Part shown: positions 44,301 to 55,582 of the stretch, one piece after another
Layout of the letters: each line of letters begins with the position of its first letter
How positions within the stretch are numbered: position 1 is the stretch's first letter
Source of the DNA: Pocillopora damicornis
Lineage: Eukaryota
DNA length: 64,000 bases
Direction of reading: 5' to 3'
NCBI RefSeq assembly: GCF_003704095.1
Contig: NW_020846779.1
Location: forward strand, 124,001 to 188,000
Program-made: the position numbers and the translations under genes
The notes under the pieces: generated by a model
What the model was told of the DNA's origin: nothing
What the model saw: the letters and a program-made list of their open reading frames with translations, nothing else
Database searches by the model: none

Positions 44301-47094
44301 ACAGGTGTCAGATTGTGACAGATACTTGTAAAAATAATGTTTCAAAGTTTGTTTGGAAGCCTTTTAAACAACTTTTAGCGGCACTACACAAATAAAATTA
44401 TCTTGGTGAAGTCTCTCTCTTTAATTTGTGTTATCTCTGTTTTAACTACCATTTTCTCACTCAAAAATTGTTCAGTTTCAGGAGGATCTTGCCATAATTA
44501 CAGCTCTAAAGCATTCCAGTCATTTTAGCAGGAATTTCATGAAGATTTAGAACAAAATAAAAATGTTAATCACCAGCATGGAGGTCCAAATTGGGAAAAA
44601 CTGAGCCCTCTGTCTCAAGGTCCAACATGAACCTCTCAGCTGGCAAATAACATACATAAATGCAGTACTTTCAATAAGATTTGAAGTAGGTGGCTACCTC
44701 CGTAAAGCATCCGCCAGAGGATAATGTGAAAAACAATTTCAATCTTGTTAACCCATTGGTTCCACTAGAGTAAAATTGCCTCCAACAGAATTTTCTGTGG
44801 CGAACTTTGGTAAATGATCATTTAATTTTACTCTCCTCCTTTGTAACATTTGTTATATAACTGATTGTTTATTTCTATTAAAAATCTTCCATTTGCTGAG
44901 TTGCAAACCTGCTGCCTGAGTTTCACACAAGAAGTCCTCTGAAAGGACATGTAGTAACTGGTTACTGAAATTTTAGTCACTATGTTGTAAAATCAAAATC
45001 TTATTTTCCAGGAAATTTGGTTTATGGTATGATAAGACAATACCAATAGTTTTTTACTCAAAACTCATTTATAAAGATACAAGTCACCTGAAAGAAATCT
45101 AAAAGACCTCCAGGTGTTTGAGGTCTCACTTCAGCTTCCAAAAAGTCACAGAAAGATCCAGAATGGTGTTAACGATCCAAAATCGCATAAAACTAAACAC
45201 TTCTAACAAGCAGTCAACAAAAATCAAAACTAGATAATATCCAGTGTGAATCAAATTTCCGTCTGCATATGTTCTCAAATTTTGAGGCTACGATCCAAAC
45301 CTTTCTTCACCTGATCTTTGTTTACAGAGGTTTCTTCTGCTTGCAATTGGAAGCAAACCTCTCAGTCTCCTGCTTCAAACACTGAACAAATTTTTTGTGA
45401 TTGCAGGTTTTTGTTTAGTTTTTGTTTTGTTTTTTGATGTGTTGTGTTTTTTTTCTTTTTTTTTTTTTTGTTACTGGGTGAAATTAAAGATTTGCGGCAG
45501 TGAATTTCACCAGTTTTATTTCCTGGGAAAACCTCAGAATTATTCTTTTCTGCAGAATTGTTCATTTAATATTTACATAGGATAATTGAATTAAATCAAT
45601 CAGCCAATGAATTTTAGTTGTTCCTACAACTCATGTTTCATATCGGATCATAAACAATCGTTGTGTTAACGTAGAACAAGGTCTTCTTCGATTTTTCAGC
45701 AAATACGGCTTTTTTTTTTATAAATTAAAGTTTAGACACTAAGTGTTTAATAGCCTTTTTGTAGTTCTCTTCACAGCCAAGCCTAGGTTAAGTGTCTATA
45801 GGCAAGGTCAACATCTTTCCAAAAAAATTTCAAATTTGATTTACATGTGCTATTAACAAGCAAGCTGTTTTAACTAACTTTGATTTTCAAGTTTGTTTTC
45901 TAACCAGCAGTTGAGAAGAACTGCTTTTGTTTTATTTATCTAAAAGTATTTAATGATTTTAGTTCAGCACAAATTTGTTTGAAAATTATTTAGGTAACTG
46001 ACAATGTACACTTCTACTTTGAGCATTATTAACTTTTATAGAACAAGTAAAACAAGCAGAGAAAGAAAACTGCCAGTGAAAGAATGAATCTAACAAACAA
46101 AGGCTATAGAATTAAAAGAATAACTGGGGTGAATACTCCAGTACTAACTTGACTGTTATTTTCTATATTATTTATTAACCTTTTTGTTCTGTAAATTTGA
46201 CTTGGACATGGCAAAGTATACGCGGCGATTCACAACAGAATACCTGCCAGAGCTCCAGCGGGTGCCGGGTGTTATTGAAAGAACTGACATGGGTTGTTTA
46301 TCTCTTATGCAAGAAGTTGCTGCTATTGCAAGATGATGCTTTTTATGTGATAGTTTCCTCAACCCTCTTCACTTATATCCGTAAAAGTGTATAATATTAA
46401 AACGAGGAATTATTTCCTGATCGCTCTTGTGAGTGTGAGGGTTGATCACGACCACGACGCTAAAAAACTAGCAATAACCCCTCTTTTTCGGTTGCGAAAC
46501 TGGATCCAAACTAAACGAAAAAAAAATATTTACCGGTACATAGTCAGAAGCAAAAGTTGCATATTAATTTGTAAATTTCTGCTACGAGTCAATTGGGGTT
46601 GCCACCCTATCGATACTGAGCACTTGGGATACATTCTTAGCACTTCATTATTTTAAAAAAAAACCGCCTCTTTAAGGATTTTTGTAGAATGGAGGGAATT
46701 ATTTCACACTCTCCCATATCAGTTGTACGATTGCCGCATCCTGGTTGCAAGTTCCTGAGACTGCAAAAGAATGCAATTTGCTCCTCCTACTAAGTCTGAT
46801 TTATGTCTTAAGCTCACTCTTTTTTTTAATCGAGTTAATAAACACAATTCTCAGCAATCAAAGAGAAATTTCTTACCTTTGGTGACAACCAGGAAATTTT
46901 TCTGTCTCTTGGCGTTAATTTCTCCTATTCCTCCCAATAGAAAACCAGTGCAAGTGTCCTTAACCAAGAAAAGTGAACCTAAGTCATTCTGACGATAACT
47001 AGACAAGATTATGAAGAGAATTGGTCCTTACCTCGTCTCCTATCACAGCAACAAGTCTTCCCTTCGCACCAGCAGAAATACCTGAGTGCGCCAT
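41317..47094 (-). CDS. ATP6V1F: V-type proton ATPase subunit F, 5 exons, 126 aa
   Basis: Exons 47094-47032, 46958-46877, 43281-43199, 42488-42366 and 41346-41317, all GT-AG. Protein [73 protein letters not shown]. Confidence 0.97.
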
Positions 47095-48514
47095 CTTGGA
47101 TTCTCGTTTGAGTCGTACGTCGTGTATGTAGAATTGTAGTGTACACATGATTTCCTCATCGCCGACAACCTTTGTCGTAATCCTGAGGTGTGTGAGACTT
47201 TATATAGGATATTTCAACAACTGCACCGATACCTCGAGTAATCGTAGTAAAGGAGGAGAGCCACTAAATGATCAGCATCGAGGCAATAACACTGAATTTA
47301 TATTCTTGGTGTAAAAATTATTTGTTTGTATGAATACCGCTCAGAGTTTGGGGCAAACCGGCTGAGCGGCTGCACTACTCATTTCCAGACTATTTCATCT
47401 TCACCTGCAGTGAATCGAACAAGATCATCGGCAGACTTATCGATAAAGGATCACATCCATTAATTATGGGAATGAATGAATAGCGAAAAGATCCATACCC
47501 CTTTTATAACCCGACAAAAGTTCTTCTTTATGGAAGTAACATTACTCTAAAGAACTGTGCGAGAACTCTTGCTCCGCGTAAGTTTTAGAGAGTAGCTTTA
47601 TATTGCACGCGCGGCGTTCTACTTTTAAAATAAAACAGTAGGGTATTTCTTTAGTTTCAAGACTAAAAAGCTAACATCTTGTTTAAAAGGACTTAGCGGT
47701 ATTGTACTGTAATTGTAATTGCAGTGTAATTATTTAATTAATAAGATACATGAAAAAATTACTAAATTCTTATTGGTTGAGATAAATGCAGTTTTCAGGT
47801 AATTCAATGCAGAAGAGGGTTAATTCAGTGCAAAGAAGTGATAAACCAAACTGAAAAATTCCTTGAATTGTTTAGCCGAACTTTGAACCTTTTTCCTCCT
47901 TAAAGATGTGAAAATATCATTGTATATTATTGTTTTGAACGCACGCGGTTGTTTTGACCGAACGCACAACGTCACTTGCAGGGTTTGAATAAATTATTTT
48001 TGCACTTGATGCGCGCGCTTTGCTTCTGCATAGTTTTTATAAGCAATCTCGTATTTTTTCATGTTTTTTTTAGTCTTTGAAAATAGTTACTCGTAATTAT
48101 TTATTCCAAATTGCGCCCGAAATTATGTGATTACCTATACTAACAATACGAGTACATTTTCATGTAACTCGGGTGCAAAGTTGTAACACAAGTGCAAATT
48201 ACAAATAGCGCGCGCGCTGCCAAAATTGCGTCCGTCTCGACTCTCTGTGATGCTTTTTCAAGGATTAAAAGCTGCACTCGCCCTACGGGCTCGCTCAATT
48301 TTGTTGTCTTTGAAAACTTTACTCGTGCTTATTTGCACCAAATTGCACCCGAAATCATGTTGTTACCAATACTAGTTACTGACGTATGATTGCAAATTTA
48401 GTTATTCCTAATTGTGACGTAGAATCAGTATTGCGGAGCTTTTCTTCATATTAGGAGTTGAGTTGCAGTGCGGAAACAAATTTTCTTTCAAGAGAAATTT
48501 TTTTACGACAAGAA

Positions 48515-51500
48515 ATGAAATTGTGGGTCGGGATTGTGTTCTTGGTTGTGTACGCACAACTGGGAATCAATGCTCGGCCCATTCCAAGATTAAGACCACT
48601 AATGAGTGATGGTAGGTAAACATTCTTGTCCGTTCCTGAATTATGTCCTAGTTAATCGATGAACCGAGAATGCCGTCTTGTCGCATCACTGGCCAACAGA
48701 TAACTGAAGTTCTATTAATCAAATTTAGAATCTGTTTCGATTGAGTGATTACAATGTAACCTAACTTATAACAACAAGAAAGTAATTAGCACAGAGCTGC
48801 CAGACGTAACCTACTTCAAAGCGACGATTGTTGAGAAACGCCTGTGCGCGTCAGTGATTGCATAAAAAATGGAACAAAGGAGTTTTTACCGAGTTTTAAG
48901 TACTTAGGTGCCAGCTTTCGTCGTTTGATCTGGAGTGAAACCGTGGAACAGAAGTGTTCAAAGGATATGTTGTGTATCCGCGTTAGTTGAATGTCTGCAA
49001 CCATAAACCCTGAATGAAATTTCAGGCACCTAAAGTTTTCAAAAACTTCGCTTTTTCTTTGACGAGTCTGTACTTTCACTACTTTATGTCCTACATTTTC
49101 ACGGTTTCCCTGAGTGAGCCCGCGAAAGTCCGTGACGCGTGCAAGCGTATTTCAGCTCCACCTTTCTAAGTTGTACAGTTCGTGATCCATTTAGGTCATG
49201 CGCGCGAATTTTTTAGTTTTAGGAGCATTGAGCAAATTAAACTTAAGCTAAGGAAAAGTCAGTTCTCAACGATAATTTATCAAAAATTCAAAGAGTAAAG
49301 ATGAAGCTCTTGATTCTGAAAATAACCATTCCGAAACGGAAGTTTTACACCAGAATGACTCTAATATTAATGACTCCTTTAGTACTAATGGTAAAACTAA
49401 GGTAATTTTGCGAAAATTTTTACTGGCGATTAGGTTGCGACTCATGGAGGAATTTTAATATAAAAATTGATACTTATGAATCTTTTTGTGTTAAAGGAGA
49501 GCTAGTGCACCATGAAGAAGTCGTCAGGAGAGACAATGATGATGATGAATCTATCGATATTGAAGGTAACCCCATGAAACGTGTCATGAAGATTCACAGC
49601 GCAATTAAGGTGATGCTAATGACTCTGTTTTTGCCAAAGGTGAGTTAGATGACGATGAAGAAGCCGAGTGGAGAGACAACAACAATAAGGACTTTATCGA
49701 TAGTGACGGTGAGCCCTACGAAACGTATCATGGATATTTACAACGAAATTAAGATAATACTAAGACTCTCTTTGTCCTAAAGGCGGGCTTGAAAACGATG
49801 AAGAGGTCGAATGGGGAGACAGTGATGATAATGACTTTATCGATGATAAAGATAAGCCCCATGAAGTGTATTATGGAGATTCACAGTGGAATTGAGATGA
49901 TACTAATGAATCTCTTTGTACGTAAGGTGAGCCAGAAGACGAAGAGGAAGCTAAATGGAGAGACGGTGATGATGAATCCAGCGAAAGTAAAGGTAAACCC
50001 CATAAAAACATATGCTTGAGATTAACAACAGAATTAAGCTGATACAAATAATTCTCTTTGCGCTAAAGGTGAGCCAAATGATGATGCAGAAGCTGAGTGG
50101 AGAGAAAGTGAGGATAATGATTCTATCGATAGTAAAGCTAAGCCCCATGGAACAAATCATGCATATCACAAGCGCAATGAAAATGATTCTAATCCAACTA
50201 TTTTTGCTAAAGGTGAAGTATACGACGATGAAGAAGCTGAAAGGATAGGCGATATTGATGATGACTCCAGCGATAGTAAAGGTAAATCCGATGAAACTGA
50301 TCATGGAAATTTACATCAGAATTAACAACATGGTAATTACTCTCATTGTGCTTAAGGTGAGTTGGAAGACGACGAAGAAGATGAGTGGAGTGACCGTATT
50401 GATAACGATTCTATGGGTAGTGAAGGTAGGTCCCGTGAAAGTTATCATGAAGATTCACAGCCAAATTAAGACGATTTTAAGGACTCTGTTTGTGTTTAAG
50501 GTGAGGCGGATGGCAGTAAAGAAGCCGTGTGGAGAGACGGTGATGATCTTGAGTCTGTCGGTGGTGAAGGTAAGCCCCAAAGAAACTTATCACGGAGATT
50601 CACAGCGGAATTGAAATGATAAGTACGACTCTCTTTCAGCGAAAGGTGAGCTGGATGACCATCAAGAAGCCAAATGGAGAGGCTCTGAGGACTATGAATC
50701 TATTGATAGTGAAGGTAGGCCCTATAAAACTTATCATGGAGATTCAGAGCAGGATTAGAATGATATTCATGACTCTCTTTGTATGAAAGGTTAGTTGTAT
50801 GACGATGATGATGATTGAAGTGAGAGATTATAACGAGTCTATCAATGGCTATGGTATGCCCCATGAAACTCATCATGGAAGCTCATACTAGAATTCAAGA
50901 GGTATTAATAACTCGTTGTATTCGCTGTAGGTGAGCTGGATGATGATAAAGAAGCCGATTGGAGAGACAGTGATGATCTTGAATCTATCGACAATAAAGG
51001 TATCCCCATGAGACTCCCGAGATTCACAGCCTAATAAAGCCGATACTAAGTGCTCTCTTTGTGCTAAAGGTGAACCCGATAACGATGAAGATGCACAGTG
51101 GAGAGACGGTGATAACGATGACTCTAGCGATAGTGAGGGTAAGCCTCATAAAACTTATCATGGAGATTTATTTCGGAATCAAGATGATACTAACGATTCT
51201 CTTCTTGCTAAAGATGAGTTGGCTGACGATGAGGAAGATGAGGGGAGGGACCGTGATGATGATGAATCTATCGATAGTGAAGGTAAGCCCTGTGGAACTT
51301 GCCATAGGGATTCGCAACACATTTAAAATGATACTTATTACCCTCTTTGTGCTAAANNNNNNNNNNNNNNNNNNNNNNNNNNNNNNNNNNNNNNNNNNNN
51401 NNNNNNNNNNNNNNNNNNNNNNNNNNNNNNNNNNNNNNNNNNNNNNNNNNNNNNNNACTAACCACTCTCTTCTTGCTTAAGATGAGTTGGATGACGATGA

Positions 51501-54500
51501 TGAAGATGAGAGGAAGGACCATGATAATAATGAATCTATCGATAGTGAAGGTAAGCCCCGTGGAACTTGTCATAGGGATTCGCAACACATTAAAATGATA
51601 CTTATTATCCTCTTTGTGCTAAAGGGGAGTTGGATGACGATGATGAAGATGAATGGAGGGACGGTGATGATAGTGAAACAAGCGATAGTGAAGGTAAGCC
51701 TCGTTAAACGTATCATATAGATATACAGCACCTTTAAAATTATACTTATGACTCTCTAAGTGCTAAAGGTGAGTAGTTGGATCACGATGAACAAGCCGAA
51801 CGAAGAGACGGTGATGGTTTTGAATCTATTGATAGTGAGGGTAAACCCTATAAAACTTATCGCTGAGATTCGCAGTAGAATTAGGGTTATTGTAATGACT
51901 CTATTTGTATGAAATGTGAGTTTTCTAATGATGAAGAAGATTTAGTGGTGAGACAGAGATGATACAAATCGATCAAAAGTGATAGTTTGCCACATATAGC
52001 GTATCATGGAGACCCATTTTAGAATAATAGAATAAGAGATACTAATATCTCACTTTGTATTTGCTAAAGGCAAGCCGGATGATTATAAAGAAGCCGAGTG
52101 GCGAGACGGTGATGATCTTGAATCTATCGATAAGGAAGGTATGCCTCGTAAAAAACTATCATGGAGATTCACAGCTTAACTAAGACGATTCTAAGGATCG
52201 ACTGTCTTTGTCCCAAAGGTGAGCCGGATAACGTTGAAGAGGCAGAGAGGAGAGAGGGGGATAATGATAATCTCAGCGATAGTGAGGGTAAGCCCCATGA
52301 GAGNNNNNNNNNNGATTCATAGCAGAATCAAGATGATACTGACAAATCTCTTCGTGCTAAAGGTGAGTTGGATGACGATGATGAAGATGAATGGAGGGAC
52401 GGTAATGGTAATGAATATAGCGATAGTGAAGGTAAGTCTCGTTAAACGTATCATGTAGATATACGGCACCTTTAAAATAATACTTATGACTCTCTATGTG
52501 CTAAAGGTGAGTTGGATCATGATGAATATGCCGAATGAAGAGACGGCGATGGTTATGAATCTATTGATAGCAAGGGTAAACTTCATAAAACGTATCATGC
52601 AGATTTGCAGTAGAAATAAGATTACTGTAATGACTCCCTTTGTATGAAATGTGAGTTTTCTAATGATGAAGAAAAATGAGTGGAAAGACAGANNNNNNNN
52701 NNNNNNNNNNNNNNNNNNNNNNNNNNNNNNNNNNNNNNNNNNNNNNNNNNNNNNNNNNNNNNNNNNNNNNNNNNNNNNNNNNNNNNNNNNNNATACTAAG
52801 GACTGTCTTTGTCTCAAAGGTGAGCCCGATAACGATGAAGACGCAGGGTGGAGATTCAGTGATAATCATGATACCAGCGACAGTGAGGGTAAGCCCCGTG
52901 AAACTTATCATGGGCATTCAAAGCAGAATGAAGATGATACTAACGACTCTCTTCGTGTTAAAGGTGAGTTGGATGAGGATGTGGAAGCTGAATGGAGAGA
53001 CTATGATGATCAAAAATCTATTGATAGTGAAGGTAAGCTTCATAAAACATATCATGGAGATTCATACACATTTAATATGATACTAATGTGCCCTATTGTG
53101 TTTAAGGTGGGTTGGATGATGATAATGATGATGAATGGAGGGACGGTTATGATATTGAAGCTATCGAAAGTGAAGGTAAGCCTCATGAAAACTTATCACG
53201 AAGAGTCGCAACACATTTAAAATGATATTGATAGTGAAGGTAAGGTTCATAAAACATATGGAGATTCGCAACACAGAAATTCACAGCTTAACTAAGACGA
53301 TACTAAGGACTGTCTTTGTCTCAAAGGTGAGCCCGATAACGATGAAGACGCAGAGTGGAGATTCAGTGATAATCATGATACCAGCGACAGTGAGGGTAAG
53401 CCCCATGAAACTTATCATGGAGATTCAAAGCAGAATGAAGATGATACTAACGACTCTCTTTGTGCTAAAGGTGAGTTGGATGACGATACAGAAGCCGAAT
53501 GGAGAGACGGTGATGATAAAAAAACTATTGATAGTGAAGGTAAACCTCATGAAACATATCATGAAGATTCGCAACACATTTAAAATGATACTAATGACCC
53601 TCTTTGTGCTGAAGGTGAGTTGGATGACGATGATGAAGATGAATGGAAAAACGGTGATGATAATAAATCTATCGATAATGAAGGTAAACCTCATGGAACC
53701 TATCATGTAGATTTAAAGCATATTTAAAATGATACTTATGACCCTCTTTGTGCTAAAGGTGAGTTGGATTTCAATGGAGAAGATGAGTGGGGAGACACTG
53801 ATGATCTTGAATCTGTCGATAGTGGAGGTAAGCCCCAAGAAACTTATCATGGAGATTCATAACGGAATTAAAATGATACGTACGACTCTCTTTCTACGAA
53901 AGGTGAGCCTGAAATTTTTCACGCCTTATTTTCGCTAATGGGAGGATCGCAGAACTTAATTAGGGAATGATTCTATCGGTAAAGTGAAGGTAAGCCCCAT
54001 GCAACGTGACATGGATGTTTATTGAGGATTAAGATTATACTAATAACTCTCTTTGCGCTAAAGGTGGGCTAGATGATGACAAAGAAGCTGACACTGAAGG
54101 TAAGTCCCATGAAGTTATCATGGAGATAAACAGCAGAATTAACACGATACTAATAACTCTCTTTGTGCTAAAGGTGAGATGGATGACGACGAGGAAACCC
54201 TGTGGTTAGGCGGCGATGATCTTGAATCTGTCAATAGTAAAGGTAAACTCCAAGAAACCTATCATGAAAATTCACAGCAGAATAAAAATGATACTTATGA
54301 CCTTCTTTATACTAAAGGTGAGTTAGATGACGATGAAGGAGACGACTGGAGCGACGGTGATGATCTTGAATCTATCGATGGTGGAGGTAAGCCCCCTGAA
54401 ACTTATCAGGGAGATTCACTCGTTGCTAGAGATGACTTCATAGATACCGAAGCTTCAGTTCCAGATACCGAAGGATTTAAGGACGTTCTTGAATTCGCAG

Positions 54501-54604
54501 ATTATTTCGCACAAACTGAAGATACAGAGTGGAGTGACGATGATGGCGAAGAGGTTTCTGAAGGCTATGGAGTTCGTGATGAGGACTCAGAATTTGCATG
54601 GTGA
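48515..54604 (+). CDS. Predicted secreted Asp/Glu-rich repeat protein encoded by many short phase-1 exons
   Basis: Exon 1 48515-48611 MKLWVGIVFLVVYAQLGINARPIPRLRPLMSD (signal-peptide-like, phase-1 donor GTAGGT). Possible exon 49301-49390. About 27 open exons, mostly 69 nt, consensus GELDDDEEAEWRDGDDxESIDSE, from 49497. Acidic terminal segment ends at TGA 54604. The exact exon set is unverified. Confidence 0.62.
49440..54420 (+). repeat. Tandem array of diverged 144-bp units (about 33 visible, two large gaps)
   Basis: The AAG|GTGAG junction recurs every 144 bp, for example at 53327, 53471, 53615, 53759 and 53903. Confidence 0.95.
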
Positions 54605-55582
54605 AACGACGACGACGACGAAAACTTTTTAAACTTTTTAAACTTTTTTGATGACTTTGGAAATGATCTGGAGGAAATCTGAAGCTCAGAGGGAAAAGAG
54701 GACCTTTCTTATTTTCAATTATTTCAATATGATAACTGTTAACCTGCCTTTGTGGAGTCCATATTTTCTGGAAGGGGAGGCCCCTTAATCAGGATATTTC
54801 AGTGAAGACAATATGTGACTGCATTTAACTTGATTCCAATTAATGAGTGAAAGTTTCGATTTCTTTTCCTGAAATTGCAGGTCCATTTTCAATTTGTGAT
54901 CGTAACAATAAAACTCTGACAAGTTAAAAACTTATTTCTGCAAAGTGTGATAACTCTAAGTGCGTAGTGGTGCGATAATGCCTAGTTATCAATTTTCGTC
55001 GTTTAATTTGGCTCATCCGCTTCTTCACTGACCGAGTGCCTATCTCAGGCCATGGTTCAATCAGGTTTAGGCTCAATGTCATCCAAATTGTATTGCAAAA
55101 TATTTCGCGCTCTTAACGGTTGTCACTTAATCAAGGAATGCCATTGGTGACAACAATCGATCAGTGTCATCAAGACTTACAAATTATAATCGCAGAATAA
55201 ATGCATAGCTTAGATTGTTGCTATTCATCGGAACAACGGTGACAAGGGTCGTTTATTATTATTCTGCGCATGATTTAATGTACCCCTATAGCGTAGTGAC
55301 TTCTCGTGTACTGCATACCCTATGTATTTTTGTGAATGTTCTTTCGTTTTACTTGAATTACCTTTTTAATTTCTCCTACTTTCTCAACCCCTTCTCATCT
55401 GTTCGTCATACACGAACAGTTGCTTTCTCAATCCGTGGACTTTGTAGACTTTTGTACAGATGTTTGGGTTTAAGCTGTACTACTTGTTGCCTAAGGAGCT
55501 TGAAACAGCTCTGAGAGTTCTTCACAGACGCTCGTGCTACTTTGAAATGGTAGATGTATATGGTAATACGTTGATAATACTA

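Follow-up and report, generated by a model that had tools for sequence, protein, structure and literature searches.

An iterated exon-plus-intron array in Pocillopora damicornis is probably an expressed gene for a secreted, highly acidic repeat protein

In stony corals, lineage-specific acid-rich secreted proteins control aragonite formation; those known are few and vary from one coral family to another. Coral acid-rich proteins (CARPs) are defined operationally by >28% Asp+Glu and an isoelectric point (pI) of <5 (PMC4878875), and for AGARP of Acropora millepora, in vitro work shows Ca2+ binding, electrostatic collapse, and a steering of CaCO3 formation (bioRxiv 10.1101/2024.06.04.597398). The silk genes Nephila Flag and Argiope MaSp2 are, according to Hayashi and Lewis 2000 as cited in PMC3563967, iterated exon-plus-intron cassettes whose introns are homogenized together with the exons. 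Here, we describe a locus of the coral Pocillopora damicornis that recalls the former in composition and the latter in architecture. It lies in a 64,000-nucleotide (nt) window (RefSeq assembly GCF_003704095.1, contig NW_020846779.1, positions 124,001 to 188,000 of the forward strand) and consists of a signal-peptide-like exon followed by a tandem array of ~144–base pair (bp) units. A first-pass annotation, made by a model from the letters alone, had taken it for a secreted acidic protein gene of about 33 exon-plus-intron cassettes. The array is a strongly expressed gene and not a minisatellite. We assign a probability of ~0.82 to the reading that a stony coral of Pocillopora type transcribes and splices it as a protein-coding gene. 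Coordinates below are window positions, and all features other than assembly gaps lie on the plus strand.

As in the silk genes, the repeated unit is one exon plus one intron; here both are homologous between units, and the exon is phase-symmetric. The silk cassettes are far larger and encode fiber motifs, whereas the coral gene has 69-nt exons and 75-nt introns, near the minimum intron size. Tandem Repeats Finder gave a period of 143 to 144 bp over 49468-54419, and a profile built from clean units placed 33 units of ~144 bp between 49497 and 54443. The short half of each unit is 69 nt long, follows an AG, and is bounded as AG|GTGAG...GAAG|GT. The long half, 70 to 77 nt, begins with GTAAG and ends with YAAAG (a pyrimidine-rich stretch plus AAAG), and most spliced introns carry a branch-like ACTAAY or ACTTAT motif ~20 nt upstream of their 3′ end. 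The two-part unit with its GTAAG start and branch-like motif, as read in the first pass, is confirmed. So is the count of open short halves: 27 of 33 are open in the phase-1 frame with a length divisible by three (26, plus the unit at 52070-52138 after correction of its boundary), and the 66-nt (49927-49992) and 36-nt (54064-54099) length variants are also in frame. Long halves had been called disrupted in three quarters of cases. They are indeed mostly broken in the read-through frame, at a slightly higher proportion (~four fifths), and only five or six of the 33 are both 75 nt long and stop-free in that frame. Composition leaves another frame of the short half mostly free of stops as well; openness is therefore weak evidence when taken by itself, and we rejected stop-free frames as proof of coding.

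Splicing was assessed from RNA. In 16 RNA runs, which came from several studies of corals or of samples containing corals, 23 to 52% of the sampled words of 52793-55000 were found, and contigs from four RNA runs were placed on 48500-54499. We list 15 joints, which stand among 34 others in the same set; statements that a cassette is skipped or never included refer to the joints listed. All 15 are of the GT..AG type, all except one ambiguous long joint fall on predicted short-half boundaries, and each cuts out exactly one long half, or a long half with one or two complete cassettes. A single poly(A) contig from run X1 (depth 736) extends from exon 1 through ten repeat exons, with joints 48611|49497, 49565|49640, 49708|49927, 49992|50213, 50281|50357, 50425|50501, 50714|50931, 50999|51070, and 51138|51214. 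Further joints are 51550|51625, 51693|52070, 53032|53107, 53683|53759, and 53827|54064. Many were found again in X6 and X10, runs from other studies, which makes three studies in all. The proposal that the 75-nt halves are introns is therefore borne out, as the joints excise long halves at the predicted boundaries; the GT..AG introns between repeat exons measure 70 to 80 nt. Unspliced contigs had a depth of 25 to 59 compared to 700 to 4300 for spliced ones (1 to 5%). The skipped cassettes are precisely six defective ones, beginning at 49783, 50069, 50790, 51769, 51915, and 53903, none of which is included.

Some RNA signals were set aside. Backward joints (e.g., 51551 to 51216) were rejected as an alternative exon order and attributed to misplacement between 93%-identical exons. 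The 1920-nt skip 51550|53471 is ambiguous, its anchor being only 21 nt. A loose 24-nt 5′ end in X6 had no match within the window. In addition, a 592-nt contig present in X6 and X10 covers 53907-54200 unspliced and runs upstream into units unlike those of the window, which hints at structural variation between individuals or a further copy.

The gene opens with a conserved upstream region and 5′ untranslated region (48393-48514); the stretch 48393-48625 is 88% identical to a paralog described below. Exon 1 (48515-48611) holds the start codon and a signal-peptide-like N terminus that is nearly identical in Stylophora. It ends in phase 1, as the first-pass annotation had stated for an upstream signal-peptide exon, and is joined to the array in the X1 contig. 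Intron 1 (48612-49496, 885 nt) is skipped in the RNA contig. It contains a relic cassette with an open acidic frame (49283-49391), a candidate second exon that we rejected, since RNA joins exon 1 straight to 49497.

The repeat exons, 69 nt long unless stated, differ in the RNA support for their ends. Both joints are seen in RNA for 49497-49565 (repeat exon 1), 49640-49708, 49927-49992 (66 nt), 50213-50281, 50357-50425, 50931-50999, 51070-51138, 51625-51693, and 53759-53827. One joint is seen for 50501-50569 (acceptor; donor predicted), 50646-50714 (donor; acceptor predicted), 51214-51282 (acceptor), 51482-51550 (donor), and 54064-54099 (36 nt; acceptor), and, in three runs, for 52070-52138 (acceptor), 52964-53032 (donor), 53107-53175 (acceptor), and 53615-53683 (donor). 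Exon-sized pieces match 52219-52287 inside longer X6 and X10 contigs and 53471-53539 in a longer X10 contig, the acceptor of the latter also taking part in the ambiguous long joint. Open frames with intact AG/GT predict exons at 52363-52431 (absent from the joints listed), 52820-52888, 53327-53395, and 54174-54242 (no spliced RNA at this position); the last predicted repeat exon, 54318-54386, is open as well.

The defects of the remaining cassettes vary. Two are open with an altered donor: 49783-49851 (AAAG|AT), skipped by 49708|49927, and 50069-50137 (AAAG|CT), skipped by 49992|50213. The 64-nt cassette 50790-50853 contains three stops and is skipped by 50714|50931, and the 87-nt cassette 53903-53989, also with stops, is skipped by 53827|54064. 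Joint 51693|52070, seen in three runs, passes over two neighbors: 51769-51840 (72 nt), with an in-frame TAG between intact splice sites, and 51915-51984, with its acceptor lost and with stops. A frame scan of short halves showed an in-frame TGA replacing the Trp codon at 52507-52575, and the unit profile marked 52650-52692 as the start of a degenerate cassette cut by an assembly gap and 53232-53326 as a partial cassette, an intron-half remnant. Altogether, 25 of the 33 cassettes are usable and eight or nine are dead, so that the first-pass figure of ~33 cassettes in the gene was too high. Non-3n indels in short halves of the window are confined to dead cassettes. Cassettes with a lost donor, a gained stop, or a frameshift are left out of the mature RNA.

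At the 3′ end of the array, a truncated 45-nt intron half (54387-54431) could be a very short intron or be read through. Read-through is in frame and keeps a linker common to the paralog and the Stylophora protein; the last repeat exon therefore probably continues into the C-terminal coding part (54432-54601), which is 57% identical to the paralog end and, in a profile search, matches the Stylophora protein (E = 5.8e-13). The open reading frame (ORF) ends at a TGA (54602-54604) where the paralog has TGG. Behind it, 54605-54682 comprises 25 open codons, which align to the last residues of the paralog, and the ancestral stop (54680-54682). The end of the gene consequently lies at this TGA and not at 54682, where it had first been placed. 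An independent public contig, 97% identical overall, also has this TGA, and an automatic gene call on it read both TGAs as Trp. This contig, being unspliced and colinear, was rejected as RNA support for the 3′ end and used only to confirm the TGA. An AATAAA at 54907-54912 is a likely poly(A) signal, and similarity to the paralog extends to ~55500. Elsewhere in the window, an unrelated 30-bp tandem repeat (3.8 copies, 79% match) occupies 34604-34717.

Three assembly gaps interrupt the array. Gap 1 (51357-51456) begins one base short of a unit end (model position 143) and the sequence resumes at about position 120; restoring the register requires 120 + 144k nt, and therefore at least one short half is hidden. 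The 10 N of gap 2 (52304-52313) lie inside an intron half and fit the register exactly, the unit being 144 nt long with N included. Gap 3 (52693-52792) begins 43 nt into the degenerate unit and resumes at model position 117, requiring 73 + 144k nt. Gaps 1 and 3 are thus out of register and may hide exons. Both of these 100-N gaps fall within a duplicated span, 51214-53470, with near-identical units on their flanks (51214 and 51482, 93%; 51625 and 52363, 92%), and it is likely that the assembly broke there because of these units. Whatever the gaps contain, the reading frame is unaffected, since every usable exon has phase 1-1 and a 3n length. Sequence from elsewhere that served for comparison comes from beyond these gaps or from the paralog.

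A model of 27 exons (exon 1, 25 repeat exons, and a terminal piece to 54604) forms one ORF of 652 codons. Its translation has 26.7% Asp and 18.3% Glu (45% Asp+Glu), 22 Trp residues, which occur in most repeats, no Cys, a net charge of about −245, and a computed pI of ~4, the floor of the method; this agrees with the several-hundred-residue, D/E-rich product with a recurring Trp expected from the first pass. Judged by eye, the N terminus starts basic, continues with a hydrophobic core of 14 residues, and shows I-N-A, with a small residue at −1, before the likely cut. According to the model, a cleaved signal peptide would be followed by ~650 residues without a domain, with ~25 copies of a 23-residue unit of predicted consensus G-E-L-D-D-D-E-E-A-E-W-R-D-G-D-D-L-E-S-I-D-S-E. 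A search for Pfam families returned no match for the repeat protein. Most likely, the product is an intrinsically disordered polyanion that is secreted. Exons of phase 1-1 are classic modules from which extracellular proteins are built.

We searched the genome (234,350,878 bases in 4393 contigs) for relatives and found one whole-gene paralog at C1548:36183-45940, with the same exon 1, ~48 cassettes, and the same C terminus. Its array is gap-free, and dead cassettes are almost absent from it. The penultimate exon of the paralog comprises a full unit of 126 nt, with intron-half sequence translated as part of it. A profile of both paralog C termini had only four matches among 1.84 billion proteins, all of this repeat family, and in this search the family was found only in the pocilloporid calcifying corals Pocillopora and Stylophora. 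Over their first 33 residues, the products of the window gene and the paralog and the Stylophora protein are nearly identical, and the repeat profiles of three arrays agree at G1, E2, W11, D13, and D21.

The Stylophora pistillata protein, XP_022794478.1 ("protein PFC0760c-like isoform X9"), is an uncharacterized automatic RefSeq prediction of 822 residues. It shares the signal peptide almost identically, the 23-residue G-E-L-D...E-W...S-E repeats, and the C terminus (E = 5.8e-13). It differs in having ~380 extra nonrepeat acidic residues between signal peptide and repeats and, in this isoform, fewer repeats. At least nine isoforms are predicted, which fits variable exon use. RefSeq models of both S. 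pistillata and Pocillopora verrucosa have spliced repeats contiguous with the same signal peptide and C terminus. The P. verrucosa model, with spliced repeats and the C terminus, is an ortholog of the 3′ end of the paralog and so belongs to the other gene and not to that of the window. The P. verrucosa locus (chromosome positions 176-11198) contains ~68 cassettes, of which 63 have open, 3n-long short halves, and is annotated as three genes of 1240, 311, and 201 residues. The difference from the ~48 cassettes of the P. damicornis paralog and the three-way annotation point to fast copy-number change and a fragmented gene model. Searches for spliced 3′ forms or named relatives returned only the query sequences. 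We found no coral literature naming the RefSeq protein or its accession, and the main text of a paper on tissue-resolved expression in Pocillopora does not name the gene. The family is already predicted automatically in sister species and is uncharacterized; we found no paper describing it.

Disruptions had been expected to concentrate in the long halves, and the gap-free paralog bears this out: short-half indels are 3n in five of five cases, while long-half indels are not 3n in 26 of 30. Pooled over unit pairs, the ratio of nonsynonymous to synonymous substitution (dN/dS) in the real frame is 0.41 in the window and 0.45 in the paralog, compared to 0.84 to 1.13 in the other two short-half frames. 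A unit-by-unit orthologous dN/dS between the paralog and P. verrucosa was not possible, as the arrays do not align one to one. Mean differences between units are 0.25 to 0.26 for intron halves and 0.20 to 0.29 for exon halves. That introns are as alike as exons is the signature of whole-cassette homogenization, explained by unequal exchange of whole exon-plus-intron cassettes, through which the array grew and is still changing. Growth by duplication of exon and intron together, as first proposed, is supported by this likeness, by near-identical higher-order copies within 51214-53470 (units 52820 and 53327 are 96% identical, in addition to the two pairs flanking the gaps), and by the difference in unit number between the congeners.

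A GTGAG right after every acceptor, encoding the conserved Gly-Glu, is invariant at exon starts in both paralogs (window 49497-54386). Each exon-exon junction therefore recreates a consensus donor, as in recursive-splice exons (AG|GTRAGT). Were these donors reused, re-splicing could yield molecules with different repeat counts and thereby adjust the length and charge of the chain. As to the introns themselves, relic units with an open intron half lie at array ends (window 49283-49391; penultimate exon of the paralog). The intron-half profile matches open relics at 49339-49388 (E = 3.5e-6) and at 45545-45602 of the paralog (E = 2.7e-4), the latter in an exon translated by RefSeq, and the read-through peptide of an intron aligns to the translated stretch of the paralog (10 of 19 residues identical, E = 0.004), although it gave no alignment to the Stylophora protein. 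These matches make common ancestry of the intron half and coding sequence plausible, in either direction. In one doubtful scenario, the 75-nt intron descends from coding sequence: an internal donor and acceptor arose within an ancestral acidic repeat of 48 codons, converting its second half into an intron, and the cassette was amplified afterward.

Could the array nevertheless be a noncoding minisatellite, or could the whole 144-nt unit be coding, long half included? Long halves match short ones in conservation, some are open in frame and are translated by automatic ORF callers, and the compositionally open second frame of the short half weakens any argument from openness. We give this explanation almost no credence: ~four fifths of long halves are broken in the read-through frame, unspliced contigs remain at a few percent of spliced depth, and RNA from three studies, with GT..AG joints that excise the long halves, already refutes it. 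It is also improbable that the locus is an expressed but decaying duplicate whose transcripts are largely nonfunctional, the work being done by the intact paralog. Such decay would account for the eight or nine dead cassettes, which the paralog almost lacks, and for a TGA that truncates the last 25 ancestral codons. That TGA is not a fresh lesion, since it is common to an independent, 97%-identical sample; moreover, poly(A) RNA reaches very high contig depth, splicing drops every dead cassette and leaves an intact ORF of 652 codons, and real-frame dN/dS is 0.41. Several points do weigh against a functional coding gene of the modeled structure. The RNA evidence consists of assembled contigs rather than raw reads, two placements within the array are possible for 79 of the 241 X1 pieces, and beyond the 15 listed joints there are 34 more. 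No spliced RNA over 54100-54499 was seen in the placed contigs, so that only homologs connect the array to the C-terminal exon; the putative last intron of 45 nt is also very short. The signal peptide was judged by eye only, and the exon count is a lower bound because gaps 1 and 3 are out of register. Finally, dN/dS in intron pseudo-frames ranges from 0.43 to 0.80, so that the comparison by halves proposed in the first pass is supportive but not decisive alone.

What the secreted polyanion does is a separate question, and a role in calcification is a hypothesis. In the secretory pathway and the calcifying space, the product would be a high-capacity binder of Ca2+ that acts in the manner of coral acid-rich proteins; its chain would repel except at the conserved Trp/Arg pair, the one sticky element. 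By analogy, we tentatively suggest a Ca2+-binding polyanion acting in, or en route to, the calcifying space. The composition of the product falls within the CARP definition, and members of its family turned up only in calcifying corals of the pocilloporid group. Like CARP1-5 and the SAARPs (Mass et al. 2013, as represented in PMC4878875), it is acidic and putatively secreted, and it comes from the coral family where CARPs were defined; in contrast to them, it has no non-acidic domain and has a regular Trp-bearing repeat, and no sequence similarity to them was detected. AGARP (UniProt B7W112) is the best functional analog, being also extremely charged, signal-peptide-bearing, lineage-restricted, and disordered, but it has 506 residues and a net charge of −148, is Phe-rich and specific to Acroporidae, and has no detected homology. 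RefSeq names the Pocillopora paralog after AGARP, which probably reflects composition only. At close to even odds, the protein is instead a polyanion unrelated to the skeleton, that is, a mucus or extracellular matrix component, a cation binder of the cnidocyst matrix, or a Ca2+ buffer of the secretory pathway. In the skeletal proteome, where the first-pass annotation had looked for a test, the accession stem and name of the Stylophora homolog are absent from the main text and tables of PMC7115838 (supplements lay outside the search). Nor was there homology to named CARP, SAARP, or AGARP proteins: searches with the whole Stylophora homolog and with its repeat region found only itself at E ≤ 1e-5, in a word-based search with a length window. 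Standard proteomics, however, readily overlooks highly acidic peptides that offer trypsin few sites. Overall, a non-skeletal extracellular role is about as likely as one in the calcifying space.

The locus adds to the acid-rich proteins of stony corals two expressed genes with extremely charged products, which we found only in Pocillopora and Stylophora and which go unnamed in the curated biomineralization lists examined. Such genes are overlooked since they resemble minisatellites, break assemblies, and are split or mistranslated by gene callers. The difference between ~48 and ~68 units in congeners suggests that the length and charge of the protein can change by a fast route. For work on very short introns, on the death of exons by splice-site loss, and on the possible birth of introns from coding sequence, the array offers a compact natural system.

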